DNA of 64,000 nt from Penicillus capitatus (Eukaryota > Plantae > Chlorophyta), in assembly GCA_965649825.1 (NCBI GenBank), contig OZ287696.1, forward strand, positions 1,097,101 through 1,161,100. Direction: 5' to 3'. The notes beneath the pieces are model-generated. The model made no database searches. It saw only the letters and a program-made list of their open reading frames with translations, and was not told the DNA's origin. Numbering within the stretch: the stretch's first letter is position 1; the number at the start of each line of letters is the position of its first letter. Below are positions 6,369 to 57,744 of this stretch, in pieces. The translations under genes and the position numbers were made by a program.

Positions 6369-7408
6369 ATGCCGTTATTGCGTGCCATGTCGATGATTGC
6401 TCTGCGAACGCCTTTCGTCCGAACGCGAATCGACGCGGCCTCGCGTCGCGGAATCGCGAGAGCGACGGCGCATGACCGTTTGCTTTACTGGGGGTCGGGA
6501 TCTGTCTACTGCTGGCGAGCGATGATCGTCTTGGAAGAAAAGGGGCTTCCGTACGAGGGCAAACTTCTCGAATTTTCAAAGAGTCGCATCCTTCTCCCCA
6601 TCTCTGTCACAGACAGCATGTTGTAAAATCTAGAGGAGCACAAATCACCAGAGGTCATGGCGTTGAATCCGAGAGGACAACTTCCAACGTTTAAAGATGG
6701 AGATGTCGTGCTGAACGAATCGGGTGCCATCGTCATGTACTTGGAGAACCAGTATCCTGAAAAACCGCTTCTCCCGTCGACTCCGGTCGAAAAAGCAAAA
6801 GTCGTCGTTGTACGCACATCCCCTATCCTTCGACGGATGCTCGGCTTAGGTGTTACAGCGATGCTTCGAAGCCATCGTAACAGACATGAAGCAACGAAAC
6901 TACACTTATTCCATGGTAGGGTATCGATCTGTTAACCAGAAGGAAGCATCCGAATCGTGTCACAGAGGAAGGAACTGGAGAATCAACATGCGCAGCAGCA
7001 GATCGAAGAAATCAAGGTATGGTCGACCGACTGGAGCATCAGATCGGCACTGCGTGCCTCCAGGCAGAGATGGCCCTGTGGGATGCATATCTGGGTGCGC
7101 AGAGATACGCAGCAACAGACGCATTCACTCTCGCAGGTACTGCTCCTTGGCAACTGTATCTTTCTGCAAGTGCCACGTTTTGCCAGATGCGATGTTGGCG
7201 CCGATGCTCTTGATTCTGGCAAGGTTTGGAATGACATTCAAAGACTATCCTAACGTAAAAAAGTACTGCGAGATGATACGGGCAAGCACGGATCTCGCTT
7301 GTTCGTCCCTGAGCTGTGTGTGTTCAGGACTATCCATCTGTGACGAAGACCTCTCCCCCACACTGGGTTGGCGCCGAACCTGCATACTCGTTCATGAATT
7401 TTCTGTAG
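6369..7408 (+). CDS. Glutathione S-transferase, rho-like class, with N-terminal extension
   Basis: LYWGSGSVYCWRAMIVLEEKGL..EHKSPEVMALNPRGQLPTFKDGDVVLNES; C-terminal FTLAD-type motif and PPHW..; 51-nt intron 6583-6633; stop TAG 7406-7408. Start codon uncertain. Confidence 0.85.
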
Positions 7409-7922
7409 TCTTGGATATTCTTTCTTCGATTTGAATGACACTCGGCAAGAGATGCCATTGGAGTGGCAGTAGTATACAATGAAACTTCTTTGTGGTTCTC
7501 TGAGTCCTGCATGTTTAAAGCGAGTCGATCGAACACACCTCTAGCAACCTGGACTGGGATGCATAAGGGACGTCTTATACTGCGTTTTCGACGCGTTCGT
7601 TATCGCGAGCTATATCGTCTACTGTGCCTGTACAGTCGTAACAAATGAGATGCCCTAAACAGCTTAACAGGTGTCTGTACATTTGCCACCAATGAGATGG
7701 CCTAAACAGAGAATCCCTCTTTTTATTAAACAGAACGGGACAGAATGCAATCGAATCAGCACTACATCATCAAGGTTATAAAATCTAGTTTGTCAAGTCC
7801 AGAATTTTTAAATGCCCAAAAGATATGCAAAAACGCCATATAATTATTCGTCCAGAGGTAATTGATAGTATCGCCCAACAACTGAAATGCACGCGATCGG
7901 CTTGATAAAAGGCTGTCTGCTG

Positions 7923-8148
7923 ATGTCAGATCGAAAATTATATGCTGCTGGAGGCTTCATCTCAGGTAAGTCGTCTTCGTCACAAACGGTCGAATGTCAG
8001 ATCAGAAATGTTGTATGCTGCTGGAGGCTGCTGGAGGCTTCATCTCAGGTAAGTCGTCTTCGTCACAAACGGTCGAATGTCAGATCAGAAATGTTGTATG
8101 CTGCTGGAGGCTGCTGGAGGCTGCTGGAGGCTTCATCTCAGGTAAGTC
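7923..8148. repeat. Nested tandem repeat: three units of a 73-nt core carrying 1, 2 and 3 copies of GCTGCTGGAG
   Basis: Units start at TATG 7941, 8014 and 8097 (periods 73 and 83). Core CTTCATCTCAGGTAAGTCGTCTTCGTCACAAACGGTCGAATGTCAGATCAGAAATGTTG is identical in units 1 and 2. Confidence 0.95.
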
Positions 8149-8239
8149 ATCTTGTCATAGCTGTTGGATATCGGATCGAATAGGTTGTCTGCTGCTGGAG
8201 GCTGCTGCTGGCTTCGTCATTAGATATTGGACGCTCGAT

Positions 8240-8620
8240 CGCAGGTCTTGGTCTTCATCGCACGCTCTCGGATGTTCGATCGAATGGTTGATCGTCTTCT
8301 CTATCGCATGTCCTGGTCTTCATCATAGCCCTCGGATGTCCGATCTGATAGGTAGTCGTCTTCATCGCACGCTCTCGGATGTCCGATCTGATGGGCAGTG
8401 GTCTTCATCGATGGCTCTCAGATGTTCGATCTGATGGGCAGTGGTCTTCGTAGCAGGCTGTCGTCTTCATCGATGGGCTGTCGAACTTCGGATCATAGAT
8501 CATCGGCTGCCGAGTGCTTCATCATCGGTCGTCGTCTTTATCGATGGGCTCTCGGATGTCGGATCGTAGGATGTCTGCTGCCAGATGCTTTATCGTAGGT
8601 TGTCGGATGTCGGCTTCGTC
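8240..8620. repeat. Degenerate ~42-43-nt minisatellite, about 8 copies
   Basis: Recurring GTCTTCATCG(CAC/ATG)GCTCTCGGATGT(T/C)CGATCTGATGG at ~8251, 8316, 8358, 8401, 8463 and 8533. Confidence 0.85.
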
Positions 8621-9220
8621 ATGTGTCGTCTCTTGTTAACACAGCTGATCATGAGAGAACCTACAGTAATTCTCTTCAACGACGCCCTTTTTGGCCAGCA
8701 TAATGAGATTGCTTCCTCGGCACATTTCTCCAGGTCTTTCAGAGCTTCACAGAATTCACCGGCTGTTGAACTAAGACTCTGACCTTGTAAGACATCTTTT
8801 CTTGATGGGCAACACTTGTGCCAATAGACCAGCTGTTAACGTAACTGAAAACCTTTGCATCGGCTGGTTTGGATTATGCTGAGCAGAGATCAATCGATGA
8901 ACTGATCTCTACAGGCGATGCAGTGATGCTGATCGAGACAGTCATCTGTGTTGACTTCTGTCCGTATCAAATCTCGGTGACCAGCCAAATCCTCTCAAAC
9001 GGTAATTTATTGATCTTCCACGACAAGACTTCACACATCAATTCTCCACAGTGTCCTCCACAAAGATCCGAATCTTCTGGCCTGTCTGGAACATCGCATT
9101 CAGCTTTTTTGCATTCTAAGGTTCCATACCTTTGGCATTATATATCAGGGGAAGAACAGCTGCTTCGCATTTACGGAAGACGACTCGCGTAGTCACGTTG
9201 CTCCAGGCTTGGATAGTTAT

Positions 9221-9433
9221 GCCATGTGCAGGACTGCGCCGATCTGCATCAAGGCAGATCGACGGCAGTCTCATGCACATGGCAGTAGCTATGGCCTCTT
9301 GAGCCGCCTCCATGTGCAGGACTGCGCCGATCTGCATCGAGGCAGATCGACGGCAGTCTCATGCACATGGAGTAGCTACGTACAGGTCTGCCGTCGATCT
9401 GCATCGAGGCAGATCGGCGACAGACTCATGTAC
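9221..9433. repeat. Three tandem ~55-65-nt palindromic (hairpin) units
   Basis: 9221-9283 GCCATGTGCA..GATCTGC-atcaag-GCAGATC..TGCACATGGC; 9308-9372 CTCCATGTGCA..TGCACATGGAG; 9380-9433 GTACA..GATCTGC-atcgag-GCAGATC..TGTAC. Units 1 and 2 are each followed by AGTAGCTA. Confidence 0.92.
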
Positions 9434-9539
9434 ACGCCGCATGTTGCCCATGGGCTGACGTCTGCATGCTTCATGCGTCTTCTCTGACCTTTTCGGCCGC
9501 TCCAGATCCGTCCTGCGTCGCACGCTGGACTCGCTCTCT

Positions 9540-10900
9540 ACTCCGGAGACTGCATCCTACGTCCTGCGCACAGAGTGAGGAGAGGGATCCCTGGCAGAAT
9601 GGATGGACACCTCTTGGCAAACCTCTTCGGTTGCTTGTGTTTTGGCTTCCTGGCAGCTCGAGGTGCGGCTCTGCCGCGCCTTCTCGTCTTCTTTGTCTGC
9701 TTCGGCTCTCTGGCAGCCTTCAGCGATCTCTTGCGGCATCAATCGCGCTTCAGTCGTACCACCTGCTGGTAGGCGACATTCATCTTCTTGGCGATGTCCC
9801 TGCACTTCTTCCAGTTGAGCGGATCCACGTCGTCCATCAGCTCCTGGAGTGTCAGCCACTTGGACGTCGTCATCGTCTTGGGCTCAACCAGTTGCCGATG
9901 ATGCACGACGCCTCCGACACCGCTGCAGCCGGAAAGCAGGACTTCATCTTTAGCTGACGGTGCTGCGAGAACACGAACTCTAGTTGCATCCAGTACTCTT
10001 CGAGGCCCCCCGCTGTGTCGAGGCCGCATCGAACGTGCCGCCTTGGGGTCGGATCCGATCCTTCGACTGCTTCGGGCTCCTCGATGATGCCTAGAAACGC
10101 AGTTCTGTAGACTGTCCTTCGTCTACGGAGGCACAGAGAGAACCTGTTTCGTGTGCGATGAACCTCGAGGATTCCAGCAGCCGGCAGAGGAGGTCCAGCA
10201 GATCCGCCAGCCGGTTGCGGGACAGCCCATCGACGAGGAGCTCGAGGTCCTCCGGCGGCACCAGGTCTAAGCCGATCGCGGCGGGCGATGGACTCGATCC
10301 CTACCGACTCCTTGCTCGTTCCCACCACCTGGAGGTAGAGGTCGACCGGGAACGAGTCTCTGAAGCTGCCGGGTCTCGAGCTTCTTCCCAGGACGCTGGG
10401 AAAGCACGACCCGGCTGCACAGGTGCTTCTACCCTACGGCGCCGCAAAGCCGCCGGCCTTCCAGTTCTACCAGACACACCCCCAAGTGAAACCAATCCAG
10501 ACTATCATGCATGCACATACCTTGGTGACGCCGACCGGGAAGGAGTCCCCGAGCTGCCGAGGGGTGAAGGGTAGTCCCACCGCGAACAGTGGACGTGCTC
10601 CGTCGACCCCTCCTCCACAGACACCGCTTCTCTCTTGGCCACGGTTGTGTGTCTGTCGAAGAGGTAGGTCTTGAACTCGGCCGAGACGGAGTCACTGAAG
10701 CCGCTGGCCCTCGAGCTTCTTCCCATGACGCTGGGAAAGCACGACTCGGCGGCGCAGGTGCTTCCCTCCGGCGGCGCAAAGCGCCGGCGTTCCAGTTGCT
10801 GCCAGACACACCCCCATGTAAGACCGAACCAGAGTGGGAGAGCACGTACCTTGGTGTCGAAGAGGATTTCTTGTGGTTGGAGGACCGCACCCGAAGAAAG
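9540..10900 (-). pseudogene. GTF3C1: Decayed internal fragment of the TFIIIC B-block-binding subunit (GTF3C1/tau138-like)
   Basis: Manual reconstruction: FPVDLYLQVVGTSK/AIGLDLVPPEDLELLVDGLSRNRLADLLDLLCRLL/[53-nt intron]/IIEEP..GLEEYWMQLEFVFSQHRQLKMKSCFPAAAVSE..NWLSP/KTMTTSKWLTLQELMDDVDPLNWKKCRDIAKKMNVAYQQVVRLKRD*CRKR. This follows the plant TFIIIC B-block subunit (VELFLEVVGST..RLSMLIDILRRL..VDEYWLTLEYCY..AFPGSVVQEV..W..RVMT..KECEKIAKDLNL). At least two frameshifts and in-frame TAG and TGA. Confidence 0.75.
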
Positions 10901-11059
10901 TTGTCTTCGGGGGGTCTTTGAGTGCGCGCTTCGGAAATCGGCGCACAGTTTGGAAAAGCAGAAATGCGAAAACTGCTATGGCGCCTCGCGTTTTATGGTC
11001 GAGGATGTGACAGCTGCAACAAATTCGACCGCGGTTAGCCAATCACAATGCGCGATTCT

Positions 11060-11640
11060 CTCCGCGGCAGTCTGATGTCAGACGAAAATGGGTCGAACGT
11101 CACTTCGCTCGGCGGGCAACCTACCACATCGCCAGTGGACTGATCTCACAGTGGAGAGACATCGAGACGATGAGGGTCGGCATGGCCTCTTCCAGGAAGA
11201 CCAGATCCCTTGTCTTCTCGTGCTGTATGGGCAAGCGAATCTGCTCACCAGACCTCTTTGCTCCCGAGCGACGGATGGAGGCAAAGAGCATAGAGGATGT
11301 GACCGACCTTTGCTGAGGCTTCCCCGTCCTTCTGGGACGCGTCGGGAGCACAAAATGGTAGCCATCTGTGTCAGACGTGCGAATCTCTCTCGGACTGAGC
11401 TCTGATAGATCTCGGAGAAGTGCGAAAGTAGCAGTCGGCGCTTTGCGACCGCATGACACAGTTGCCAGATACCAAATTCGGCAGGCATTAGCATCCGACG
11501 GTCGAGGTCGTCTTCCAGGGCTTCCTGTGCATTGGACATGAACTTGCCCATGAAGGATCATCATCCAGCGAGGAGGACTTTCAGCAGCCAGTAGTTCGGA
11601 GCATGGGCGTAGAGCATCGCCGCATCGCGCATTAACGCCA
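11060..11640 (-). pseudogene. COG4: Decayed C-terminal fragment of COG complex subunit 4
   Basis: LLLSHFSEIYQSSVRERFARLTQMATIL matches COG4 ALVSHFSGMTQRTVRDKFARLTQMATIL. Upstream DDDP/MGKFM and downstream W/RLPAE remnants lie in shifted frames, and the intervening conserved segment appears shortened. Confidence 0.7.
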
Positions 11641-12017
11641 GACAGTGCTCGGGAACGCATTCCCTGTACACCCAGACGGTCTGACGCGGGATTCGTTTTG
11701 ATCATCTTGTTATCAGTAACAGAAGCTGGGTACTGAATTGTATCATCATCTGGGACCTTCTGAAGGATTTGCAGACCGAGACGCCTTTTCTCTGGCGTAT
11801 CTTGGAAAGATCTACATATTGGGGACAATTACACCTATTCATACAGGATCTATATCTGTGGGGTTTTGTGGATATCATCTGCTTTAGCATAGATGGTCAC
11901 ACTTTCACTTTTTATGAACTCGTTGAATTGTATTGGCGGCGACGAGGTCAAGGAACCAGATGTAACTCGAGAGATATCTGTTGAAGCCGTTTACCTTATG
12001 AATTCTCGCAGCCCTTT

Positions 12018-12243
12018 ACATGTGGAGCTGGACAATGTGTGGGTGCTTTGACCTTTACTAGATCTCCACCTCTTGCCACGGCTGGCACTCGGCCTTGTCT
12101 GCCAACACATACTACTTGCCTGTACGCTAAACGCGATACAAGCCCTCTAAAAAGACGGCCTGTCTTTCGTGGACCATCCTGAGGGCAATGTGGACGTGCA
12201 TTTCGAAGCGACGTAGATGTGACCAAACTTGTTCTCAGCCACA
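12018..12243 (-). pseudogene. Decayed N-lobe fragment of an Aurora-like Ser/Thr kinase
   Basis: ENKFGHIYVA/HIALRMVHERQ/[probable intron]/DKAECQPWQEVEI**RSKHPHIVQLH resembles Aurora [35 protein letters not shown]; one frameshift and tandem TAG TAA. Confidence 0.55.
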
Positions 12244-12537
12244 TGAGGTTATCATTTCATGCTCTTTAAATCGTTGGTGATCGTCTGGGCGATTCAGAGG
12301 TCAGACCGGAAGCGTTCTCGTCGCGTCGAGACGCCTTCCACAGCTCCACTGACGACTCTGAAGATCGTTTGGATCAAGGGGATCCGAACGGACGTTTCCA
12401 AAAACGGCTCAGCCTGTGGCGGCGAGGGGCTAGATCGCTCCAGCGGTCACACCGCTGCGATTTGGGTTTCTGCCTCTGCAACGCGTGGTTGCATGAGATG
12501 GAGTCTGACAATGAATGACAGAAATCCAGGCGTCCAG

Positions 12538-15500
12538 ATGGAGTCGTCTGGTCCATCAAATGCGAGTTACGTTCGTGCGGCGTCCAATGATGCGCAGTCG
12601 ACTGCCCTGTCGAGTGCGTTGCGCGCTCAGCGTCCGAGTCGCCCCTCGACGTCCAACAGCTCGACGTCGGCTGTCGTCGCGAACGTCGACGCGTGAGGGC
12701 CGTCCCGTTCACTGCTCAGAAAAGTACGCGTTGCCCTCTGCATTGTGGGGCTTTCGTGAAGAGGCGCGACAGGAATCTCATCTCCGTCTCCGTTGTCGAG
12801 AATGAAGTCGAGAAAAGCAAAGAAGAGAAACCTAGACGTCGATCTGTGAGTCCAAAATCACGGATGAAGGCCGTGGCCGAAAAAGTGAGCGCGGCAAGGG
12901 AACTGGCACGGCGACTTGCAGAAGAGAAAGAAGCAGCTGTCAAGACCGGAAAACAATACAAGTACTCAGATCGATCCCTCATGTTACCTGACATTTTACA
13001 TGTCTCAGTGAACGGATTCTGAAATCCACAGAGGCGGCTGCTACTGAGGCAGCCATACAAGCAGCTGAAGCAGATGCTATGAACAGAGCTGTAAGGTTGG
13101 CAGAAGCGGGAAAAGAAAAGGTCGCTCCACGATTCTGTCGTACACGCCCTCGGCAGCTGTTTTCAGGACGCCGAGTTGCGTTATTTGAAAAAGTTCAACA
13201 AAGCTTTGAAGGCAATGGTATTGGATGTTGCCGTGGATAAAGATGAAGCAAGGAATAGACTGGATGAACTGCTTCAGGAGTTCAAATCCGCCGAACTGGT
13301 GACAGAGGTGCATCGTCTGACCGTCGCTATGCCCGAACTGTTTTTTATCATTCTTAAGGAGGAAAGATTGGCAACAGAGGAGGAAGAAGCAGAAGAAGTG
13401 GTAGAAGCAGCGCCAGAAGTGGAAGTCCCCTCGCCACTCGTCCCGGAGGTCAGAATCAAACTGCCAGGCCGTAGTCAGAAGGAATGCTGTTCAGGTCCCG
13501 GTGGAGGAACCTAAGTTGGATACCCTCAAAGTCGCGGCAGATGCTGCTCTGCAGTCGGACACACCTTTCTTCACCGTGCCTTCTGAGCCACCGATCGGAA
13601 AACCTATTCAGTTTCTATACAATCGTCTGGCCGGTCCTTTGCCAGAAACGGATTCTGTTTCTATCAAGTACGGAATCAACAAGTGGGAGAACATTGGGCA
13701 TATCAAGATGAAGCGAAGCGAGACGTTAAGTGACATAGCGGGTGAGTGGTGGGAAGCGGACCACGATTTGGAACTATTGCTCTATCGATTCGATTTTGTC
13801 GTTGTGGATGACGTCTCTGGACTCGTGGATAACAACAACTCCAAGGATTTCTATCTGAAGCTCAAAGGTGCGCTGACAAAAAGTCAGCTCTTGGAGAAAC
13901 GTCTGGCGCTCTTCGATGAGATTGAACAGAAACGAAACGCCGAGTTCGAGGCCGAGATTTGTAGACTCAAGTGACACCACTGCTTTGTCGTTTTTGGTAT
14001 CGTTCATGGAAGATTTCAAGGCAAGAAGCCGAAGCTAAGGCAGAGGAGGCAGGCAACGAGGCTCGAGAATCTGTCGTTGCTGAATGGGAGGCAGAGCTGA
14101 CGGAACGCGTTCTAGAGACGATCGGAGATCGAAGAGCTCAGGCCATCAAGGCACTAGGACGAGAGGAAACGATCAAGGGACCACGAGTGGCCTGGTTTGG
14201 AGATCTGACGCCTGGAAGTCGCGTCCTATTGACCTACAACTCGAACGAAGGGCCTCTGAAGAATGCCACTACCATCCGGGTGCATCTGGGAACAGACAAT
14301 TGGTACAAGGAGCAAATTGACGTAAGGGATCTGCCAAACTGTGTGATCGAATTGAGGTGTCGAATTCAGATAAGAGAATTGAAAAAACTGTCCGCGGAAG
14401 AGATACAGAAGAACAGAGTGGAAGAGGAATGTGGACCAGGTAACTGGTGGGGCATCCCGATCGACATTCCTGTAGAGATTGCCGTGATGAATTACGTATT
14501 CGACGATGGAAAATCTGCCGAGTGGGACAACAACAATGGACGTGATTACACGACTCCTATCTCTAATCCCTTAACACACGATCAACTCGTCGAAAAGAAA
14601 AAGGACGATGTGCGAAATGAGTTGACGGAAGAAAGGACACAACGCGTCGAGGGAGCCGCCACAGCCGCCAGAGACCGCATTCTCTCACGCGTAAGGCCAT
14701 CGATAGACGTGGTGCATGGCTGATGTGACGTTGATGTAGTTCGATTCGAGAATCCATCGCTGGCGTTCTCAGTGGCAGTACCTCTACACCGATCCCATTC
14801 GAGTACAGGCTGGACAGTCTGTCGAAATCTGCTATCGCCCGGATCTGACGGTCTTGCGCGGTCGACCGGATGTCTATGTCCGTGTGGGGTTCAATCATTG
14901 GAGGCATCCAACGGGTATCCGTGCTATTAAGTTGGAGCCGATGATTGCCAATAACGTTGGATTTGAGCGTGCTGTTATCGATGTGCCAGAGGATGCACAC
15001 GACATGGACTTTATGTTTTCTGATAATCCTGATCTCCACGGCGGTTTTGTCGACAACAACCATGGCTTCAATTATCATTTCCCTGTCCATGGCAGCTCCG
15101 TTGCCCCACAACCGTTGAAGATCGTTCATGTCACGGTGGAAATGGCGCCGATTGCAAAAGTGGGCGGGTTGGCCGATGTGGTCACCGCACTGGGCAGAGC
15201 TGTGCAAGAAGAAGGGCACAATGTCGAGATCATCATGCCCAAGTATGACTGCATCGACTACGGCCAAGTGGAGAAGCTGGAGAAGCGTCGCAGCTTTAAT
15301 TTTGCTGGAAGCCATGTTCAAGTCTGGGCCGGTTTTGTGGAAGGACTGAATGTGACGTTTATCGAACCGGACAACGGCATCTTCTGGGTCGGGTGCATTT
15401 ATGGAGAGCAAAATGATGGTCAGCGATTTGAATATTTCTGTGGAGCCGCCTCAGAGTATCTCCGCATTTTCAACCTCTCTCCAGACATCGTTCACTGTCA

Positions 15501-16489
15501 CGACTGGCAAACGGCTCCCGTGATCTGGAGTGATCTGGCAGGGGCAAGAACCGTGTTCACGATACACAACATGAACTACGGTGTGGAGTTGATCGGTCGA
15601 GCAATGCATGCCACGACGGTTGCTACGACCGTTTCCCCAACCTATGCCACAGAGATCAGCGGGATGCCAGCAGTGGAGTCCAATTTCGCAAAGCTCTACG
15701 GTGTGCTGAACGGCATCGATGTTGACATTTGGGATCCATCTCGAGATCGGTTCTTGCCCATGAACTACAACGCAGAAACGGCCGTCGAAGGCAAAGCTGC
15801 TGTGCGTCAAGAACTCAGAAAGAGACTCAATCTCGCACAGATCGATGTTCCCATTGTGGGTGTCGTCACCCGCCTCACTCCACAGAAAGGCATCCACTTG
15901 ATCAAACACGCTGCGTGGAGGACACTCGAACGCGGAGGACAGTTTGTCCTGCTGGGCTCTGCTCCAGACCCCAAAATAGAGCACGACTTCAATCAGTTAG
16001 CAATGGATTTGAAATCGCAGTACCCTGATAGAGCATCTCTCATGTTTACGTATGACGAACCCCTGAGTCACATCATCTATGCAGGATGCGACTTCTTCCT
16101 CGTGCCATCCATCTTTGAACCGTGTGGTCTGACACAGATGATCGCCATGAGGTACGCGCATTTCTTCAACCCTGTTCGGCGACCTAGAGTGCATTGGCAG
16201 GTATGGCACGATCCCGATTGTGCGAAGAACAGGTGGACTCAATGATACCGTCTTCGATGTCGATACCGATGAGGATCGTGCTCAGTCGAAAGGCGTGGAT
16301 CCCAATGGTTTCAATTTTGAAGGAGCTGATGAAATGGGCTTGGATTATGCTCTGAATCGAGCATTGGGTTATTTCTTGAGCGATCGTCCAGCGTGGAATG
16401 CATTATCGCAATCTGTCATGCGTCAAGACTGGAGCTGGAGTTTGCCAGCTCTCGATTATCTTTCTCTCTACTACAAAGCGCTCAGCTGA
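12538..16489 (+). CDS. SS3: Soluble starch synthase III (CBM53 repeats plus GT5 domain), multi-exon
   Basis: Three CBM53-like modules (..DFVVVDD..DNNNSKDF; MNYVFDDG..WDNNNGRDY; MDFMFSD..DNNHGFNY), then VEMAPIAKVGGLADVV, HCHDW, RLTPQKG and PSIFEPCGLTQMIAMRY; TGA 16489. Start and first intron uncertain. Confidence 0.93.
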
Positions 16490-17595
16490 GCTGCGTTTAT
16501 GATGTGCGGTATTGATGGACGGCGGTTCAATTCTTTTTTCATGGATGATGTGACAGGACGGGTGTGAGACGCCGAGGTCTTGTTATTGACACACGACATC
16601 TTAGACAACTTTGGTTCAAGATTCGGCATTTTGTTGACACCTCTCTCATAACGCGCTGTTCTGTTCTTTCGCTGATATGCCTTGTTGACATTTCGTGCAC
16701 TCCTCCGAGATCATGCCGCAGTCGATGGGCAGGCAGTCAATGAAAATGGCATATTCAGCGGCGATGATCTCTCGAGGGATGCAGATTCGATCTGAGCAAT
16801 GGGTGATCTCCGCGGAGACGCCGATGGATCATCCTTCGGAGAAATAGCGAGCTGTTTCTTAAAGGCCCGCGTGACAGATCATATGGACGATCGAGAACAG
16901 CGGCGACGGATTCGTAAAGACGCGGCGTCGTCAATTTAACCGTTTCTTCGCGGCGACCGCCATCAAACGGTTGAAATTAAGCGGCAGACACATCGAAGAT
17001 TAAGCGAGGCACTGGGCAAGCAGATTGTGCGAATCACAGCGTTGGTCGCTTTGATGGCGTCGGAGTACTCAGAAAGACAGCGTGTGTATCGGTGGGCAGA
17101 TCTCTGATTGCAAAGGACGGCATCCGGTTGAAGAACAAGGTCTCCCGTCCAGTAGGATGCTCCCAGGGTGATAAATCTGTCGAAGAATGAAGCACTATGA
17201 CGTTACCGTCAGGACAACTCAACAGCGAAGACATCCCTGAAAGAGTAGATTCAGTTTCGGAAGCTTTACTCAACGCACAGGCAGCTGACGTGCGCAGAGA
17301 CGTTCGAGGAAGTCGCTTCCTATAAAGAGATCCCGTCACTGTCGTGCACGCGAAGAAGCTGCAACGAAGCTGCTGCTGTTTGCCGAGACAGGCGCGTGAC
17401 ATTAATGACCGTCGTTCATCATCATCCTCGCGTTCATCGAAGCAGATCAGCCTCGATCAGTATCCGACGACGAATAAAGTATCTCTGCCGTTGCGCGATG
17501 GGACGTTCGGTCATGTCAGCCTTATTTAATGGCCCAGGCATTAGTCGCGTAGACGCGTTTTTGGTTCGTCACATTTCACAACGCACTGACTCCGT

Positions 17596-18220: not shown

Positions 18221-18751
18221 GCTTGCATGCGGACAAGCATGGCGTTTTCATGCAGTCTCTTTCACACGTATACTTACTTACACACACCACACCACACCAC
18301 GTCCATCATAAGTTGTATGGCTTCATAAAGATTGGTCGTATCCATTTGTCGTTGTTGTTGCTGCATTGTTGTTGTCTTCCTCGCCGATGGATTGCACACG
18401 TTTGCATTTCGGCGTGAAGAGTGTGAGGTTGTTACCTCGTGCTTCGCTGTTGACTGTATTTTCTAGTACATTGCGCATGTGGGTATCGAGAATTGATGAC
18501 GAAGTATCTGTGTCCATAAGAGATGGGCCGCTGGGGTTGTCACACTTGGCAATTCTTGACGCATCTGGATCTACAATATCTTGTTTTGAAAATCGAAGAG
18601 TATTCACTCTCAGATGTGACGACTTTGTTTTTGATCCGAGGGATTGTGAGTTCTCCTTCCCTGTCTTCCTCATCGTTCGAGTATGAAACTCAAATCCAAT
18701 GTCATCTCGTTGCGGCAATTCACTGTGCTGTCATCAAACGCATGATGTCAG

Positions 18752-25745: not shown

Positions 25746-25893
25746 CCCTTCCCTCTTCGCCTTTTTCCTGTCGACTCCAGAGATCTGAATGTGTCTGTGT
25801 CCTTTTCTTAATGCTCCCCAAGACCAAAGGCCACAGAATTTGGTGTGGGGTTTTGGCAGGCAAGGCGTTCGTACGTGCGGTATCGCACATCGC

Positions 25894-26676
25894 ATGATGG
25901 AACTCTTTCGACAGTCTCCCGGCGACATCCACCCACGTTCGACACTCGTGGTGGCCTCCGTATCTGTTGGCAATGTTGGTCAGCTGTCCTGTGAGCTGCT
26001 TTTGGCGAACAACGACCACCAACGCGTCGGCTATCTACTGGATCCCAATGTTCTGCCGTGTTTTGGACACGATCCATTGAGCCATGGCTCTTCTGCACTC
26101 AGTCTAGAGCTCTATCTACTCAAAGAAGCATCCCCACCGACGTATGTTCTGCAGCAGAGAGCCCCGGCGCATGTCGGGCGTCAGAGGGCATTTGCTGCCA
26201 ATCTGGTGCAGTGGATCATGCAATGCGGTTTTGAAAAGGTGGTGCTTTCGAGTTCTATCGAGTTAGAGGCACGTGGCGAAGCCCAGTTGCGCCAACAGAG
26301 ATGTTGGTACGTGCAGACAAAGCAGACATCCATCGATGCCTTCGAAGCGATCGGCGTGCCATCCCTCTTGGCACACTTGGACATACCAGAGAAGGTCTGT
26401 CACGTCACCACGGTCAAATCGATCCATAAAACAGCGTCTATCTATCAGGAGTTTCTATCTAGACGGCTCTCTCCATGGTCTGTGCTGGCCGAGTGCCAAA
26501 AACAGGACCTCCTGGCAGTCGCATTGCTGTCCTTTACTGTAGAGGGTGATAATCTGCAGGATGGTATGGAACAGACCCGACTCTTACAGTCCTTTCTGGG
26601 ACTGAAACACGTGGAGCACCTTCAGATGCCTGTCACCGTTCGGACGGTATTCGGGAGCCGCCTGAGCGTTGTCTAG
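25894..26676 (+). CDS. PSMG2: Proteasome assembly chaperone 2
   Basis: LVVASVSVGNVGQLSCELL, LDPNVLPCFG, SLELY, VLQQRAP, EGDNLQDG; one in-frame intron likely. Confidence 0.88.
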   Translation: MMELFRQSPGDIHPRSTLVVASVSVGNVGQLSCELLLANNDHQRVGYLLDPNVLPCFGHDPLSHGSSALSLELYLLKEASPPTYVLQQRAPAHVGRQRAFAANLVQWIMQCGFEKVVLSSSIELEARGEAQLRQQRCWYVQTKQTSIDAFEAIGVPSLLAHLDIPEKVCHVTTVKSIHKTASIYQEFLSRRLSPWSVLAECQKQDLLAVALLSFTVEGDNLQDGMEQTRLLQSFLGLKHVEHLQMPVTVRTVFGSRLSVV

Positions 26677-31579: not shown

Positions 31580-34500
31580 ATGATGTGGCATCGTCTATGT
31601 TCGCCAAAATGCCGTATCCTATTGCCAGAGCCGAAACTCACTCGGTTCTTTCAGCCCATCTCGCTAACGCCGCCACTGGAAGAGCGACGAAACGGCACAT
31701 CGCGATCTGTGGGGATCATGACCCAACGGGCGACGCGTTCGACCAGCGAAGCTCCAGTCGAATCGACAGGAGTCTGTCCAGAAATCTGTACACCCTTGTC
31801 GACATCACACATGCTCAAACTGAGTCCAAAGATGCATTCTGCTAGTCAAGGAGACGTTGTCTAGTCTGCCAAAGAACTTTGATCCTGCTTTCTCTGAAGA
31901 GAAGATCTATCAATGGTTGGTTGGCTGCATGATCACGTGCTTCGATGTGTCCATGCATTTTCGTAGGTGGGAAGAGAGTGGGTTCTTTGAACCTATTGCC
32001 GATGCCGATTCCTGTTTCGTGATCCCGATGCCGCCGCCGAATGTCACTGGGCGATTGCATATGGGCCATGCCATGTTTGTGGCGATGCAGGATGTCATGA
32101 TCCGTTTTGCAAGGATGCGAGGAAAGAGTGCTCTCTGGCTGCCAGGCACAGATCATGCAGGCATTGCCACTCAAGTTATTGACAACGACCACATGAGCGC
32201 CCTCTCACACTCTGGATGTTCCAGATGGTCGTGGAGAGAATGTTGAACGAACAGGGACTTCAACGCAGAGATCTTGGCAGAGAGCGATTTGAAGAAAGAG
32301 TCTGGGAATGGAAGGCCGAGTACTTAACCTCTCGTCTCTTCTCCAACGTCTAAGCAGTTGAGGATTGTTAGGTATGGAGGATTCATCACCCAGCAGCTTC
32401 GCCGATTGGGGGCGTCCTGTGATTGGTCTCGGGAAAGATTCACACTGGATCAGAAGCTCTCGAGTGAGATGAAGCTGAGCAGATGCAGATGCATAAATCG
32501 ACTGTTCTCTTAGCTGCTGTCAATGAAGCTTTCGTACGGTTGCATGAGAAGGGGCTCATTTATCGAGGGAGTTATCTGGTCAATTGGTCACCCTCGTTGC
32601 AAACCGCCGTCTCCGATTTGGAAGTGGAGTACTCGGAGGAACAGGGAACGCTTTACACTTTCAAGTGAGGACGAGGCCACAAAGTCTGTTGAATGCATCT
32701 AACGTGCTTTTTCGATTGACAGATACCCAATTGCAGATGCAGACAAGCAAGATCATATTCCTGTTGCCACGACTCGACCGGAGACGATTTTGGGCGATAC
32801 AGCTGTCGCTGTCCATCCATCCGACCAGCGCTATCAACATCTGATCGGAAAGAAATGCATTGTTCCCATGACCGATCGGCAAATTGAGATCGTTGCGGAT
32901 GATTATGTGGATATGGAATTTGGCACGGGCGCATTGAAGATCACACCTGGGCACGACCCTAACGACTACGAAATCGGACAGCGTCTTCATCTAGAGATCA
33001 TCAATATCTTGAACAAGGATGGAACGCTGAATGAAAACTCGGGAAAGTATGCAGGGCTGGATCGCTTTGAAGCACGAAAGGCATTGTGGTCTGACATGGA
33101 GGCGGCGGGACTGACCTTGAAGACGGAGAAATACCAGATGCGTGTTCCACGGAGTCAGCGAGGAGGTGAAATTATCGAACCCCTTATCAGCAAACAATGG
33201 TTCGTAAAAATGGAGCAACTGGCAAAACCGGCTCTCGATGCCGTTCGTTTGGGCGACGTCAAGATCACGCCGTCTCACTTTGAACAGATTTTTAACAACT
33301 GGCTTGAGAATATCAAAGATTGGTGCATTTCTCGTCAACTCTGGTGGGGCCACAGAATTCCGGTATGGTATGTCAGATCCGATGCCTCGCCGACCACAGC
33401 TGACAGCTACATCGTTGCTCGATCTTACACCGAAGCCCTGTCAGAAGCAAAGATGCTCTATGGTGATACGGTCGAGCTGGTTCAGGATCCTGACGTATTG
33501 GACACGTGGTTCTCATCAGGTCTCTGGCCTTTCAGTACATTGGGCTGGCCAGACACCTCAGATCCTGATTTCCAGAGATTCTATCCGACGGACGTGTTGG
33601 AGACAGGACACGACATCCTGTTCTTCTGGGTAGCCCGGATGATCATGATGGGTATCGAGTTTACAGGCAAGCCTCCTTTCTCTCTAGTCTATCTTCACGG
33701 TCTGGTGCGGGATGAGAAAGGAAGGAAGATGTCCAAATCGCTGGGCAATGTGATCGATCCGATGGACTTGGTATCACAGTACGGTGCCGATCCCCTCAGA
33801 TACACCATGGTCACAGGCATCGCAGTGGGACAAGATCTCAACTTGAATCTTGAAAAGTTCACATCCGCGCGGCATTTTGCTAACAAGCTGTGGAACATCG
33901 GAAAATTCATCGGTATGAATCTGCCCAGCCATCCAAATGAGCGTGGGAGCTTGGCGGATGTCGATTTCTCGACAGGAGACAGTATTGCGTCATTGCCTGT
34001 CGTTGAAAGATGGATCCTCAGTCGATTGCATCAGCTTGTCGACCGGATGACCGATTTGCAAGAGCGATACGATCTGAGTGAAGCAGGAAGAGAACTGTAC
34101 GAGTTTATCTGGTTTGATTTTGCAGATTGGTATGTCGAGGCTGCCAAAACGCGCCTTGGCACAACAGCAGATCCTTCCCTCAAACGACAGTCGCAGTGTG
34201 TCTTGGTCTACTGTTTCGATCGCATTCTGAGAATGATGCATCCTTATATGCCGTTCATAAGCGAACGTCTCTGGCAAGCGATGCCGCATCGAGGCATCTC
34301 TTTGGCAATGCGTTCGTGGCCAGAGACAGAAGCTGCTGTCGATGATGATGCGCTGGCGGTGGTCGATGCCCTGCAGTCAACTGTTCGAGCTGTCAGAAAT
34401 GCTCGTGCCGAGTACAATGTCGATCAGGGACGCAATATACCTGGCAGTGTGGTCGTTCCGGATCGGCAATTGCTGGAAGTCCTTCAGTCCGAGGCAGATG

Positions 34501-34844
34501 TCGTGACACTGCTGGCCAAGATGCGCCGAGATCAAACAGCTTTTGTCGCATCTCTGCCGAACGGCGCCACATCGAAAGAAGAGATGATCACATTGATCGT
34601 GAAGTATGGCATCGAAGTGGTATTGCCGATGTCTGGACTCTTCGATCCGGCCAAAGAACGCGAACGGCTTGAGAAACAGAAGGCAAAGGTGGCGAAAGAA
34701 TTCGAGGATCTGCAGAAGAGATTGCAAAACCAGAGTTTCCTACAGAAGGCGCCAGCAGATGTGGTGGATGGCGTACGATCCAAGTGCAACGAAGCAGAAG
34801 CACAGTTGGCGCAAATCTCTCTGAAGATTGCATCCCTTACATGA
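31580..34844 (+). CDS. valS: Valyl-tRNA synthetase, organellar (bacterial) type
   Basis: [14 protein letters not shown] (HIGH), [36 protein letters not shown]-terminal coiled-coil arm; N-terminal transit-like peptide. Confidence 0.97.
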
Positions 34845-34919: not shown

Positions 34920-36643
34920 TCATTCTTCTTCTTGTTGTTCGTCTTGTAACAGATGAAGCAAATCGGGCGATACCATGGCAGGTATGGCATGTTCTTTGAG
35001 GACAGCTGCCGTCGATGACCACGCCGTCTCCGACGAAATCACGACCACGAGATCGTAATCGAGGTCGAATTTCATATACTTTGTACGGCAGGTCTTCACC
35101 ATATGGACAAGTTGCTTAATATCATGCACCTCCTCATTGTTAAAACGCAAAACCTAAGAAGCGTGTGCACCATCAGCAGACATACAGGACAGAAGGTGCT
35201 TTGTTTGACCTGAGCATTTTCCAAGTCTTCGTATCCCACTGAGAGATCGCACGCCAGGACTTGTGATAGAAGAACGACCTGATCGCCCGTTTTCTTCGGC
35301 CGTCCAAAGAAGAGATTGTTCAGGAGCTTAACAGGAGACTCGGTATCGAAGTCCATTCCATACTCGCTGACGAGATAGGGTTCATTCAGGGTGGTGAACA
35401 CAAAGCCGGCTAGAATGAAGTAAGAGGGAGCCCCGTTGTCCAGATGCGCCGGCACCAGATTTTCCAATTTCTGTAACCTGACACCGTGGATGACGGTTAG
35501 TGTCACGTCACTGAGCGCAGAGATCTCACCGGATCTGAAAGGAATGTTGCGTATTGTCTCTCAGAATTGTTACGGTTGCAACATCTCCGACGTATTTCTG
35601 GGCCACGAGATAGGTGAAGGAGATCCGCTCGTCCGTACGAAAAGGAACGGTCCCATCGTTTGCCAAATTCACTCGGTCGAATTCCAGCAGAACATCTCCC
35701 GGAAGAAGCACACCATGAGAACTCGATGTTGGATTGACGGAACGAATCAGCACGCCCGACTGATCAGACGTTAGGCCGTATGCCTCCCTCAGATCAGCAG
35801 ATTCCAGTTTCTGCCATTGGATGCCTAGACTTGGGAATCCGGTAAACGCTTTATTGCGTCTGTAGTCCAGAAGAAAGTGTTGAATGACGGGAGTGGGGAC
35901 GACGTAGCCAATGTTTTCGATATCCGTTCCAGCATAGGACTGAAAGGCAATGCCAACACATACACCGTGTTCATCGAAAACGGGCCCACCAGAATTGCCA
36001 CTGTTGATCGCTGCATCGATCTGGACTCCCAGTAAATCACAACTGCCGTGCAAGTACTGTGTCACTTCGACACGTGAGACCACACCAGATGTGACCGAAA
36101 TGGTATCACCTCCTACTGGATATCCCACCACAGTCACATGGTCTTGCAGATTCGGCAAGGGTCCGAGACACAGAGGACTGATGCCTTCCCAGAATTCCGA
36201 TTCGTCTACGGTTAACAGAGCGATATCGCAATCGGTGCCGATGGACAAGACACGTGCAATAAACTTGCGATCCTTGTCCCTTCTCTTCACCTGGACCTAA
36301 CAGCCGACGATACAGATGCGGTCAGCGTCTTAAGTACAGAAAGAGTGCGAACTTGGGAGTAGTACGAAACGGAATGGGCATTGGTCAGCACCCATCGCTC
36401 CTTTCCCTGTGCCACCATAAACCCGCTACTGCTGGACGCGTACTGACGCTTTCGCTGCCAGGGAAGCGAGAAGTTCGGCTCTGTGTGTTTGCAGAACACT
36501 TTGACAACGGCATTGAGTCCAGCCTGAGATCAAGATACCGATCTGCACATGGTTGGTCACACTTTTGAAAGAATGACCTGAAATTCGATGTGTTCCTCCT
36601 CATCTTCTTCGCCCTCCTCGTCAACGTCGATGCCTCCCGGCAT
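34920..36643 (-). CDS. Deg/HtrA serine protease (Deg2/Deg9 group)
   Basis: [22 protein letters not shown]; triad TNAHSV, CDIALL, GNSGGP; PDZ region and C-terminal second PDZ. Start uncertain. Confidence 0.92.
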
Positions 36644-55191: not shown

Positions 55192-57744
55192 CTAACCGTA
55201 CAGCCGACCAACAACTCTGCCAGTGAGTGCATAGGTTAATAGCACAGGAGTGGCAGCATCCATGAGATTGACACGCGGGTCCAGACTGTGCGCAAATCCC
55301 ACGATAATGCAGACACCGATGACCAGAGATGCATAACCACTGTCAATACTGACACTGTGTTTTCGAGCCAGACGCAACACAGACTTCATCACAGCATCCA
55401 GATCGATGCCAGCCTCGGAATGGACATCGCATTCCGTACGGAACAGACAGGACATATCTTCCACAAAGGCCTTCGGATGTGGACACTGTTGATCATCGCT
55501 CCATTGCAGCAGATGCTGAGCGGCCTGGTAGCCATCGCCCTTGGCAATCAAATTGAGGAAAGAAATGAAGTGCTTTCGGATTTTCGGTCGCAATTCTTCG
55601 GCCAGTCCAAAATCCAGCAGCACAATCTGAAGTCCTTTCTCCCCATCTTCCTGTTCCACCTCGCGCACCAAGATGTTGCCGGGATGCAGGTCTGTGTGGA
55701 CAAAGTTGTCAGACAGCAGCATTTTCAGATAGGCATCCACGCCCAATGTCACGATCTTAGTATTCAGTTCTGAAGGTGCCTTGATAAAACGCGCCACACT
55801 GACCCCCTCTTCGTACGTTTCTACGAGAACAGACTCCGACACCAACTCTTCGATGACTTGAGGAATCACAATGGCATTCTTGACCGGCTCAAAGTTTTGA
55901 CCAAATCTTCGGATGTGCGCCGCCTCTACTCGAAAATCTGTTTGAGCTGTCATTGTATTCGAAAACTGTGAAACAGATTCTCTGAGAGGCAGGTTTTTCA
56001 GTGTCGGTATTCTGGATGCCATTCCAGCGATGGGCTTCAGAATCTGAAAGTCCAGATGAATTTGTTGCCCCACATTCGGATGACGAACTTTCACAATAAC
56101 GGGAACGATATGTCCATTTCTTCTGTACAGGGCTCGATGGACCTGAGCCACACTTCCAGACGCCAACGGTTCGTGTTCGAACGCTTCGAAAATCTCTTCG
56201 ACTGGCCGGCCGAAAGATCGCAGGATTTCTCTTCGGGTCTGCTGCATGGGATGAACAGGAGCATTGTCATGCAGTGCTGACAAGACGTCACAGAATTCAA
56301 CGGGAAACAGATCTTCTCGAGCGGAAGACCATTGACCCCATTTGATGAATGCCGCTCCTCCATCTCTGCAACCCTGCAGCAATCTCTGAAAGGCGGCGAT
56401 GCGCATCCTGTTCACCCATTTCTTCCGCAGCGTCAGTTCAAAAGAACTCGATTCCTGTTTCGGACGCGACCTCTTTGCCTGCCGATGACATTTGTCCAGA
56501 GAATAGGCAATCAGCAGCAAAAAGACACCAAGTAAAATGAATGGCAGAAATGCTAAAAAAAGTCGCAAGCCACGGAGAGACAGTTCGAGCCTCTCGACGG
56601 CCGACAGTTCCTTCTCTTCGATGACGTGATCCTGTCGACCGTACAGTGGCAGCACGATCTCCATTCTTTGTCCCTGCTTTTCCATTTCCCTTGTCAAATC
56701 ACCATCATTTGAAGACATGGCTTCCAATTCTGCTTCCAGCGGAAATTCGCTGATCTCTGAAACGGGACGGGCCACATAGGATGGACAAATGACAGAAGGA
56801 TGCTTCTGCTGACTGGAAGACGCTTGCAGCGCTACGTCCAGTCTTCCGTCCACGACTCCTTGAATGGTCACACTTCTGTCACGCGGAATGTGTGGATGCC
56901 TTATCCGAGGCGCCTTAGGTCGGGGTCCAGGATTCAAATTGACAATCCACATCCATCCGTGTCCATCGGATAAAGCATGCACAGGAAGTGCACTGTCTTC
57001 TACAGCGCGTCCGTATTCAATACTATTTCTCTCACAGAAATCGATCAAGCTTTTCAGTGGCGGTGTATCTGGCAAGTCTTTCAGCAGATGGGCGACGCGA
57101 CAGGCAGCTTGTTTGTGGGCCTTCAGCCATGCCTCTTCGATGGCTTCGTTGCCGACAATCTTACCACGAGCGATCGCTTTCGCCAGTCGCTTATAGCTTC
57201 GATCTACCTCCATCAATTCCATACAGCACTCCAATGTGTGATAAGACTCGACGAAACATCTGCCCCAGATTTCGCGAATTCCGCAGTAGATCAGCACCGG
57301 TTGTTCGACCTGACCCGCGATCTCTCTCAAAAAACGCACCAGCGAAAAATCGTTCCATTCTATCAGAGGCAGTGCCGTGGATTCTGGCGTCGTTTCGACT
57401 CTTCTGGGCTGACGTGTGAACAGAGCGACAAGACTGGTGAGGCAGAAGACTTTCTCAACGAGGGGTACAATTCCGGGAACCAGCAGGCGAAGGGCGGCAA
57501 TGCCTGCGACGCGACTGGCACAGACAACAGATCTTCTCACACTTGACATCCATCCCTCACCATCCAATGTCACACTCTGTGTCATAGACTCCCCCTCGTC
57601 CACTGGAGCACCTGCCAAAAACTGAAAGGCCTGAACGCGAAGATCTGGTCGACATCCACGCCCAACGCCGATTCGGAGACTCATCGGGAACCACAGTATA
57701 GCACGCCATCCGGCCAGAAGAAAACGACATCCAGCCACTATCAA
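55192..57744 (-). CDS. ABC1/UbiB-family atypical kinase (ADCK2-like) with long N-terminal extension
   Basis: GAAFIKWGQW, LHDNAP, LASGSVAQVH, VKVRHP, QTDFRVEA, HTDLHPGNILV, LDFG; 850-codon open frame. Confidence 0.92.
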   Translation of the reverse strand: MIVAGCRFLLAGWRAILWFPMSLRIGVGRGCRPDLRVQAFQFLAGAPVDEGESMTQSVTLDGEGWMSSVRRSVVCASRVAGIAALRLLVPGIVPLVEKVFCLTSLVALFTRQPRRVETTPESTALPLIEWNDFSLVRFLREIAGQVEQPVLIYCGIREIWGRCFVESYHTLECCMELMEVDRSYKRLAKAIARGKIVGNEAIEEAWLKAHKQAACRVAHLLKDLPDTPPLKSLIDFCERNSIEYGRAVEDSALPVHALSDGHGWMWIVNLNPGPRPKAPRIRHPHIPRDRSVTIQGVVDGRLDVALQASSSQQKHPSVICPSYVARPVSEISEFPLEAELEAMSSNDGDLTREMEKQGQRMEIVLPLYGRQDHVIEEKELSAVERLELSLRGLRLFLAFLPFILLGVFLLLIAYSLDKCHRQAKRSRPKQESSSFELTLRKKWVNRMRIAAFQRLLQGCRDGGAAFIKWGQWSSAREDLFPVEFCDVLSALHDNAPVHPMQQTRREILRSFGRPVEEIFEAFEHEPLASGSVAQVHRALYRRNGHIVPVIVKVRHPNVGQQIHLDFQILKPIAGMASRIPTLKNLPLRESVSQFSNTMTAQTDFRVEAAHIRRFGQNFEPVKNAIVIPQVIEELVSESVLVETYEEGVSVARFIKAPSELNTKIVTLGVDAYLKMLLSDNFVHTDLHPGNILVREVEQEDGEKGLQIVLLDFGLAEELRPKIRKHFISFLNLIAKGDGYQAAQHLLQWSDDQQCPHPKAFVEDMSCLFRTECDVHSEAGIDLDAVMKSVLRLARKHSVSIDSGYASLVIGVCIIVGFAHSLDPRVNLMDAATPVLLTYALTGRVVGRLYG

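Follow-up and report, generated by a model that had tools for sequence, protein, structure and literature searches.

The gene-fragment island between GST and SS3 in a Penicillus capitatus contig: probable pseudogene and segmental-duplication debris at a synteny breakpoint

The island of gene fragments at positions 7923–12243 of a 64,000-nt stretch of Penicillus capitatus contig OZ287696.1 (the whole stretch is referred to here as the window) lies between a GST gene and the starch synthase III (SS3) gene. It is probably pseudogene and segmental-duplication debris at a synteny breakpoint, made up of a decayed native kinase gene and a patchwork block copied as DNA. A first-pass annotation had seen in it a candidate gene-capturing element. 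The analysis bears out that the interval between GST and SS3 holds no intact gene, and that the mosaic consists of pieces of unrelated genes, most of it (9155–11691) copied as a block into one other genomic context, represented by loci L007 and L009. As one element the island does not hold together, since the kinase relic and the composite block have separate histories. Our verdict is that the island is a real feature of an ordinary kind, and that a gene-capturing element is not demonstrated. The features described here lie at the following coordinates, far beyond chance:

6462–7434, plus strand: GST gene, apparently intact, with several exons and short introns (Pfam and tblastn exon positions)
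7944–8132, no strand: tandem array A, an 83-nt unit repeated 2.2 times at 100% identity, with an embedded 10-nt GCTGCTGGAG microsatellite (TRF)
8234–8605, no strand: tandem array B, related 65-, 43-, and 71-nt units sharing the motif GTCGTCTTCATCG (TRF)
8606–9154, no strand: region d, single-copy, without a recognizable gene, common to locus L001 only
9155–11691, minus strand: GC-rich composite block (the core), where homology to L007 and L009 starts and stops sharply
9222–9435, no strand: three tandem palindromes of 57–61 nt (9222–9282, 9310–9370, and 9379–9435)
9541–10860, minus strand: TFIIIC large-subunit (GTF3C1-like) pseudogene fragment, approximately residues 700–1010 of a protein of ~1970 aa
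10861–11345, minus strand: X2, a stretch with no gene identified, flanked by the COG4 patch and the TFIIIC fragment, common to L001, L007, and L009
11346–11437, minus strand: COG4 patch (RLLLSHFSEIYQSSVRERFARLTQMATILC), 91 nt, 30 codons, an internal part of the final COG4 exon
11438–11691, minus strand: X1, a stretch with no gene identified, which in L007 and L009 runs on into the DNA just upstream of an RRP12-like gene
11692–11989, no strand: region b, AT-rich filler (40% GC) between the core and the kinase relic, without a Pfam match
11990–12425, minus strand: Aurora-like kinase relic, with exon 1 at ~12207–12425 and exon 2 at 12022–12126, truncated at ~12000–12026
12693–16500, plus strand: SS3 gene, divergent from the kinase relic

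The loci compared with the window come from several contigs. L007 and L009 are the two ends of contig ERZ25074695:ctg329487_20x_l (37,469 nt); L004 is the record at 592.5–612.9 kb of the ENA contig shared with the window (ERZ25074695:ctg340460_36x_l), and L005 is a 7x sister contig of L004; L008 is a 7.8-kb contig from the same sample at 12x. Contig ctg340460_36x_l is 844,522 nt long, and the window is probably the reverse strand of its ~400.1–464.1 kb, as the window ORF at 11078–11539 (minus strand), protein P0122, is placed at 452,564–453,025 of it. Coverage is 36x for the window vs. 20–22x for L001, L007, and L009, and a shared genome is assured only for L007 and L009.

The SS3 region is collinear in the window, L002, and L003, and these three loci show the kinase gene in three states. 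In L003, SS3 is immediately preceded, on the other strand, by an open multi-exon Aurora-like kinase gene with the HRDLKPEN and DFG motifs; among the loci compared, this is the only intact copy. L002 contains the same gene at full length, with in-frame stops and a frameshift. The window retains exons 1 and 2 only, matched to the intact L003 kinase by tblastn and interrupted by in-frame stops, e.g., TAGTAA at 12055–12060. The window is 84% identical to L002 over 14 kb; the alignment is unbroken from SS3 through kinase exons 1 and 2, and homology ends at ~12012–12026. The decay of the gene can thus be followed at one position, from intact (L003) to full-length pseudogene (L002) to truncated relic (window), and is therefore local, without capture. 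As judged from alignment and gene order, these loci show the kinase piece to be a truncated relic of the native head-to-head neighbor of SS3, not captured cargo. The Aurora-like kinase N-lobe reported earlier on the minus strand is indeed present, although it comprises two exons with stops and decayed in situ. The argument from three co-oriented captured fragments keeps the shared orientation and loses one member, the kinase being native; the fragments are co-oriented because one is a native gene and the others belong to one block that arrived whole. The kinase relic resembles a unitary or duplicated pseudogene decaying in place in that its exons keep their order and it still occupies its place next to SS3 in the native orientation, but this comparison fits only 11990–12425 of the island. 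Upstream of the kinase pseudogene, at L002 1414–3300, there are GC-rich, coding-looking tandem repeats (e.g., EAEAARPRKDDRQPGAGRAGKE units and NNNDATTASSSTAE units) without a counterpart in the window.

The composite block has homology at L007 4916–7212 and, in two pieces, in L009. The order of segments (X1, COG4 patch, X2, TFIIIC fragment, palindromes) is the same across copies; hence, the patchwork was built once and copied afterwards. The block is the most GC-rich stretch of the window, with up to 63% GC vs. 50.3 ± 3.2% for the window. Its GC content of 58–63% is close to that of the L007 surroundings (56–63%) and foreign to the window locus, which suggests that the window-type locus was the recipient.

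The TFIIIC fragment is identified by Pfam domains DUF7647 (33.4 bits, cut-off 27) and DUF7645 (24.4 bits, below the cut-off of 27), and by the best full-database HMMER matches, which are proteins of 1076–1974 aa with the complete TFIIIC domain set in order. Three of these relatives, P0129, P0131, and P0132, carry B-block_TFIIIC, eWH_GTF3C1, and DUF7599/7646/7647/7645; P0132 is listed in UniRef as the “B-block binding subunit of TFIIIC” of Ostreobium, and the nearest named relatives of the fragment are from Bryopsis sp. and Ostreobium quekettii. The earlier identification of an internal GTF3C1 segment is thus solid. The fragment retains three GT-AG introns of 51–54 nt (10091–10143, 10467–10520, and 10799–10849), the first of which is proven, as intact TFIIIC proteins align uninterrupted across the site. 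Because the introns are kept, the piece was copied as DNA and not via RNA, as the first-pass annotation had argued; signs of a processed pseudogene or retrocopy are absent, with introns present and no poly(A) tract. The fragment contains an internal tandem duplication of ~335 bp (10342–10530 vs. 10677–10859). Its lesions include a CGA to TGA nonsense mutation at 9739–9741, a 1-nt deletion near 9880, a 15-codon deletion, and further frame changes. Lesions are specific to individual copies: L001 has no DUF7647 part, and L007 keeps the 15 codons absent from the window. When the fragment was used as query in a word-indexed protein search, the L001 copy was the sole match, and the fragment was not found in JGI metagenome scans.

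Identity of the COG4 patch is 96.7% with the intact exon of L008 and 93% with the COG4 pseudogene of L004 (Pfam COG4_C, E = 0.007). Its edges are sharp, neither flank is related to COG4, and the true C-terminus of the protein is absent, so that the reported “COG4 C-terminus” is COG4-derived, but is a 91-nt internal patch of the last exon. Elsewhere, COG4 occurs as an intact-looking copy in L008 and as a pseudogene in L004. The latter is near full-length (L004 2611–10657), and lies on the contig of the window ~140–150 kb from the island. Compared with L008, it has an in-frame TAG and a change of frame, has lost 6 nt, and contains an insertion of 2.7 kb; the L004 lesions recur in the sister contig L005. 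L004 also contains, at 18481–18739, a kinase exon-2-like remnant with 65% identity to window 12021–12266. Together, the pseudogene and the remnant indicate that gene debris is a general feature of this genome.

The copies of the block are parts of larger duplications. In L007, the block is sharp-ended between the RRP12-like gene and unrelated DNA (Sua5 gene), and the L007 flanks have no match to the window, L001, L002, or L004. Between L007 and L009, an inverted duplicate of 4.4 kb (96%) extends from inside the block to 2.5 kb past its “end”, and a second inverted duplicate, of 1.6 kb (94%), begins in RRP12 exons, crosses the opposite “end” of the block, and reaches into X1. The duplicates on this contig are in rearranged order, accompanied by smaller pieces, and one block copy is split at the COG4 junction. 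L001 shares window 6780–11347, which comprises the last two-thirds (3′ side) of GST, both arrays, and region d. Here (L001 4938–6252 vs. window 6780–7957), the GST gene is 5′-truncated: exons 1 and 2, encoding the N-terminal domain, are missing, and the homology stops abruptly inside the gene. Past this break, L001 contains a trypsin-like gene and a CS-domain gene. Introns and non-coding flanks thus recur at other loci with breakpoints inside genes, as is characteristic of segmental duplication.

In the global alignment with L001, GST exons are 93–98% identical and the island is 92–95% identical; the divergence of the island (5–8%) is slightly above that of GST exons (2–7%). An apparently better conservation of the island compared to GST (90–92% vs. 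83%), suggestive of selection or recent spread, was an artefact of gapped BLAST and disappears in the global alignment. Region d is 93% identical to L001 2974–3539, and region b matches none of the loci compared and no other part of the window.

Three junctions show microhomology. X1 and the COG4 patch share CGACTGC (7 nt), seen in L009, L008, and the window; the COG4 patch and X2 share TGCTTC (6 nt), while the left partner in L001 is different and contains another COG4 piece; and an extra partial TFIIIC copy in L001 is joined at CGAGTCGT (8 nt). Duplication and repair are favored over transposition, because the copies are situated in larger duplications, with breakpoints inside genes and microhomology at junctions.

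The following sequence of events best accounts for these observations. An Aurora-like kinase gene, natively head-to-head with SS3, became a pseudogene, and a rearrangement in the window lineage severed it after exon 2. The 2.5-kb composite was already a patchwork before it spread, probably stitched together by microhomology-mediated joining or template switching in the course of break repair or replication; here, the pattern is observed and the mechanism is inferred. The composite was then probably copied as genomic DNA by segmental duplication and inserted beside the broken kinase gene, after which the copies have decayed neutrally and independently: they acquired nonsense and frameshift mutations, lost segments, and expanded by tandem duplication on a local scale and by growth of minisatellites. 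The closest known parallel may be complex segmental duplication in which microhomology mediates template switching or end joining, as in fork stalling and template switching (FoSTeS)/microhomology-mediated break-induced replication (MMBIR) events or in “filler DNA” where breaks were repaired. Like the products of such events, the island is a patchwork of short segments from unlinked loci, with microhomology of 6–8 nt at junctions (n = 3), breakpoints inside genes, and retained introns, and its copies are located within larger inverted and direct duplications and have no transposon ends. The differences are that the mechanism is deduced here from old junctions in diverged copies and not from fresh events; that X1, X2, and region b have no recognized parent; and that such events are uncatalogued for this green alga.

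Both ends of the block and of the island were searched for transposon signatures, and the result agrees with the first-pass statement that no transposase, terminal inverted repeat, or target-site duplication could be identified (scan of open reading frames (ORFs) in the window, inverted-repeat search, and comparison of flanks). No pair of terminal inverted repeats links the surroundings of 9155 and 11691 or of 7923 and 12243, and the ends are not mutual reverse complements. No direct repeat is shared by the window flanks (...CAAAACGAA before the block and TTCTTCCCC after it), nor by the L007 flanks (...CACCAGAAT and GTGCCACTG). The end sequences of the block are 5′-TCCCGCGTCAGAC... and ...GCGAAGCNGCTGG-3′. 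With the host base set off by a slash and boundaries uncertain by 1–4 nt, the block reads A/TCCCGCG...GCAGCTGT/T in the window, with 3′ CTGT and not CTRR, and T/TCCCGCG...GCCGCTGG/T in L007, with 3′ CTGG and the 5′ host base T. Helitrons have 5′-TC and 3′-CTRR termini and are inserted between host A and T without target-site duplication; maize Helitrons carry exon–intron fragments of several genes. Pack-MULEs are Mutator-like elements that carry gene fragments in rice and other plants.

The three hairpins reported earlier are present: the palindromes fold as DNA at −79.7 kcal/mol (z = −11.2), and none of 200 shuffles folds equally well. They are found in all four copies (window, L001, L007, and L009), with 97% of stem cells paired and three double changes; 2 of 500 shuffles reach the observed covariation score, which is a control count and not a probability. 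Paired changes, present on both arms, set palindrome 1 apart from the other two (GTACA/TGTAC vs. GTGCA/TGCAC; TCTG/CAGA vs. ACTG/CAGT); hence, the symmetry is kept despite divergence. A small palindrome, GTAGCTAC, is found within the spacers of the 9222–9435 palindromes. No Rfam family matches the palindromes at the gathering threshold, and relaxed thresholds yield sub-threshold generic hairpin matches only. Neither the palindromes nor the block ends occur outside the composite in the rest of the window or in ~126 kb of related loci, and the palindrome core is absent from JGI metagenome scans. In the DNA searched, the hairpins are confined to the composite and do not form independent repeats; single-copy hairpins had been named in advance as one of the outcomes speaking against a capturing element.

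Several observations weigh against duplication debris as the explanation of the block. Its sharp ends, with 5′ TC and 3′ CTGG/T in L007 (CTGT/T in the window), resemble Helitron termini; the palindromes are close to one of the ends; and pieces of at least two unlinked genes are united in the block, as in capturing elements. No near-identical intact TFIIIC parent was found, the best intact relatives being 42–54% identical and none of them from this genome. Microhomology of 6–8 nt at only three junctions is no more than suggestive. Finally, given the difference in coverage, the contigs may belong to more than one genome, and the number of copies may not be that of the window organism.

Part of these observations would be expected if the block were a low-copy, non-autonomous Helitron-like or other cut-or-copy element that moved COG4 and TFIIIC fragments between the RRP12 and GST–SS3 loci, with the palindromes as a subterminal signal. 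The same sharp-ended block, of GC content foreign to the window locus, indeed occurs in two unrelated contexts; the lack of terminal inverted repeats and target-site duplications is as expected for Helitrons; the palindromes in the 3′ part are conserved in all copies; and, as in Helitron gene capture (e.g., in maize), the cargo consists of co-linear intron-bearing fragments of unrelated genes between a 5′ TC and a 3′ end that is near CTRR. However, the termini are imperfect, as the 3′ end in the window is CTGT and the 5′ flanking base in L007 is T instead of A, and TC...CTRR is a criterion of six bases, applied to boundaries whose position can be given only to within a few bases. The Helitron 3′ palindrome is ~16–20 nt long and lies ~10–12 nt from the end, whereas the palindrome nearest to 9155 (9222–9282; 57–61 nt for the three) is 61 nt long and ~65 nt away. 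Members of a Helitron family would be expected to have common ends and different cargo at many unrelated sites, alongside an autonomous partner that encodes RepHel; here, all copies carry identical cargo, one of the two known contexts lies within larger duplications that cross the “termini”, and neither ends nor hairpins recur elsewhere in ~190 kb of related DNA. No autonomous partner was detected, with no RepHel or transposase among the ten long ORFs of the window that were scanned. Such an element is therefore unlikely, and Helitron- or Pack-MULE-like capture, as initially proposed, is not supported: the block shares with Pack-MULEs the uptake, at the DNA level, of small fragments of several genes including introns, and chimeric ORFs, but neither block boundary has long terminal inverted repeats or a 9–10-bp target-site duplication. 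A narrower form of the same idea, in which the block is the relic of an undescribed low-copy rolling-circle-like element of an ulvophyte-like alga with TC...CTRR-like ends and a triple-palindrome subterminal signal, is slightly less likely still; if true, the microhomology junctions would reflect template switching during replication of the element and not break repair by the host.

Somewhat less credible again is the possibility that all fragments are relics in situ, with whole COG4 and GTF3C1 genes whittled down by deletion after functional copies had arisen elsewhere. Such a history is demonstrated for the kinase; the TFIIIC fragment keeps its introns and ~310 codons in native order; and the contig also contains, in L004, a COG4 pseudogene that spans the whole gene. 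Nevertheless, whittling would not yield a 91-nt patch that is 96.7% identical to the live gene with no trace of COG4 in its flanks, the GC content of the block is foreign to the window locus, and X1 of L009 enters a different sequence exactly at the COG4 junction, which indicates a join and not a series of deletions. There is little reason to consider the island as partly functional, either as a chimeric new gene or as a hairpin-RNA or small-RNA locus formed by the palindromes. An ORF of 145–153 aa does span X1, the COG4 patch, and X2 in both the window (P0122, 11078–11539, minus strand) and L007, and no part of the block is better conserved than the palindromes, with the pairing described above maintained through the double changes. 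Yet the reading frame differs between the copies (P0122 vs. P0123), the window and L007 using different frames for the C-terminal half of the ORF; L009 has no COG4 patch; Pfam and Rfam provide no support, as none of the long frames in X1, X2, region b, or region d matches a Pfam family; and DNA itself, through inverted-duplicate origin and intrastrand conversion, can keep palindromes symmetrical without selection. An assembly artefact, in which a metagenome contig was chimerically joined or kept long-read errors that had escaped correction, is the least probable of these explanations. Assembly ERZ25074695 is a metagenome with several related strains at other coverages (the window belongs to contig ctg340460_36x_l), and read errors could explain single-base frameshifts; but the order of segments, the junctions, and the palindromes recur in three independently assembled regions (L001, L007, and L009) with 5–17% divergence, the distribution of stops and large deletions, either shared or confined to one lineage, is tree-like, and the flanking SS3 and GST frames are clean. 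Pseudogene and segmental-duplication debris at a synteny breakpoint is thus retained as the probable origin of the island. We see no evidence of a function, and nothing in the island need “do” anything.

The two tandem arrays correspond to the earlier description. In L001, array A has another copy number, and array B is ~80% identical, with indels. The motif AGTCGTCTTC is found in the arrays at 7969–7978, 8052–8061, and 8354–8363, and in the tail of the block, just past the palindromes, at 9176–9185; the microhomology at the extra TFIIIC copy of L001, CGAGTCGT, overlaps with the first seven bases of this motif (AGTCGTC).

A dispersed repeat of 1–2 kb, with copies 70–78% identical, is observed at L009 8707–9725, L004 2611–4665 and 15577–16757, L008 1492–3552, and L002 3281–4376. 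In L008 and L004, it lies on the upstream side of COG4; in L007 and L009, it is found downstream of the composite block. The window does not contain it, and no Pfam match to it is on record. It could be an uncharacterized transposon or a fast-evolving gene family.

Of the flanking genes, GST matches Pfam GST_N_3 (32.9 bits) and GST_N (25.8 bits). The 463-aa catalytic frame of SS3 carries Glyco_transf_5/CBM53 and is 93% identical to P0002; SS3 identity is 93% with an ORF on another ENA contig (L002) and 80% with an ORF of a Logan assembly (L003), vs. at most 61% with named proteins (Volvox and Chlamydomonas-type sequences being the closest) and 50% with Micromonas. With these SS3 identities, and with Bryopsis and Ostreobium as the nearest TFIIIC relatives, an assignment of the DNA to a low-GC “outlier chromosome” of a mamiellophyte picoalga was rejected.

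Genes of this lineage contain many introns of ~37–55 nt; hence, standard ORFs are mostly short, and prokaryote-style ORF calls in public collections break up every gene. The earlier remark that neighboring genes have intact 2-kb frames applies to few genes (a 684-aa valyl-tRNA synthetase and an 850-aa ABC1), while most genes of the window are cut by tiny introns. One apparent GC-AG intron is seen in the L003 kinase (introns around L003 6900–7300). In the ten long ORFs of the window, the Pfam scan finds valyl-tRNA synthetase, ABC1 atypical kinase, DegP-like trypsin–PDZ protease, PAC2 proteasome chaperone, the NAD-binding domain of homoserine dehydrogenase, and protein kinase; the rest have no match, and no transposon proteins are among the ten. 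Of these housekeeping ORFs, valyl-tRNA synthetase is located at 32790–34844, the ABC1 kinase at 55192–57744, the DegP-like protease at 35526–36290, PAC2 at 25789–26676, and the protein kinase at 58615–59844. No tRNAs were found. A non-standard code with TAA and TAG read as Gln, as in some ulvophytes, was rejected, since frames of 463–850 codons have no in-frame TAR and stops do not consistently occur at Gln positions.

Co-oriented, intron-bearing gene fragments alone are no proof of a capturing transposon. The locus raises no long-standing question; it is a small, well-resolved case of a gene-dense algal genome gathering gene debris at a synteny breakpoint, in which the death of a kinase gene can be followed in three steps across lineages, and junctions with microhomology are still visible. 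It indicates that this lineage often rearranges and segmentally duplicates its DNA, which matters for the binning and annotation of metagenome-derived eukaryotic contigs.

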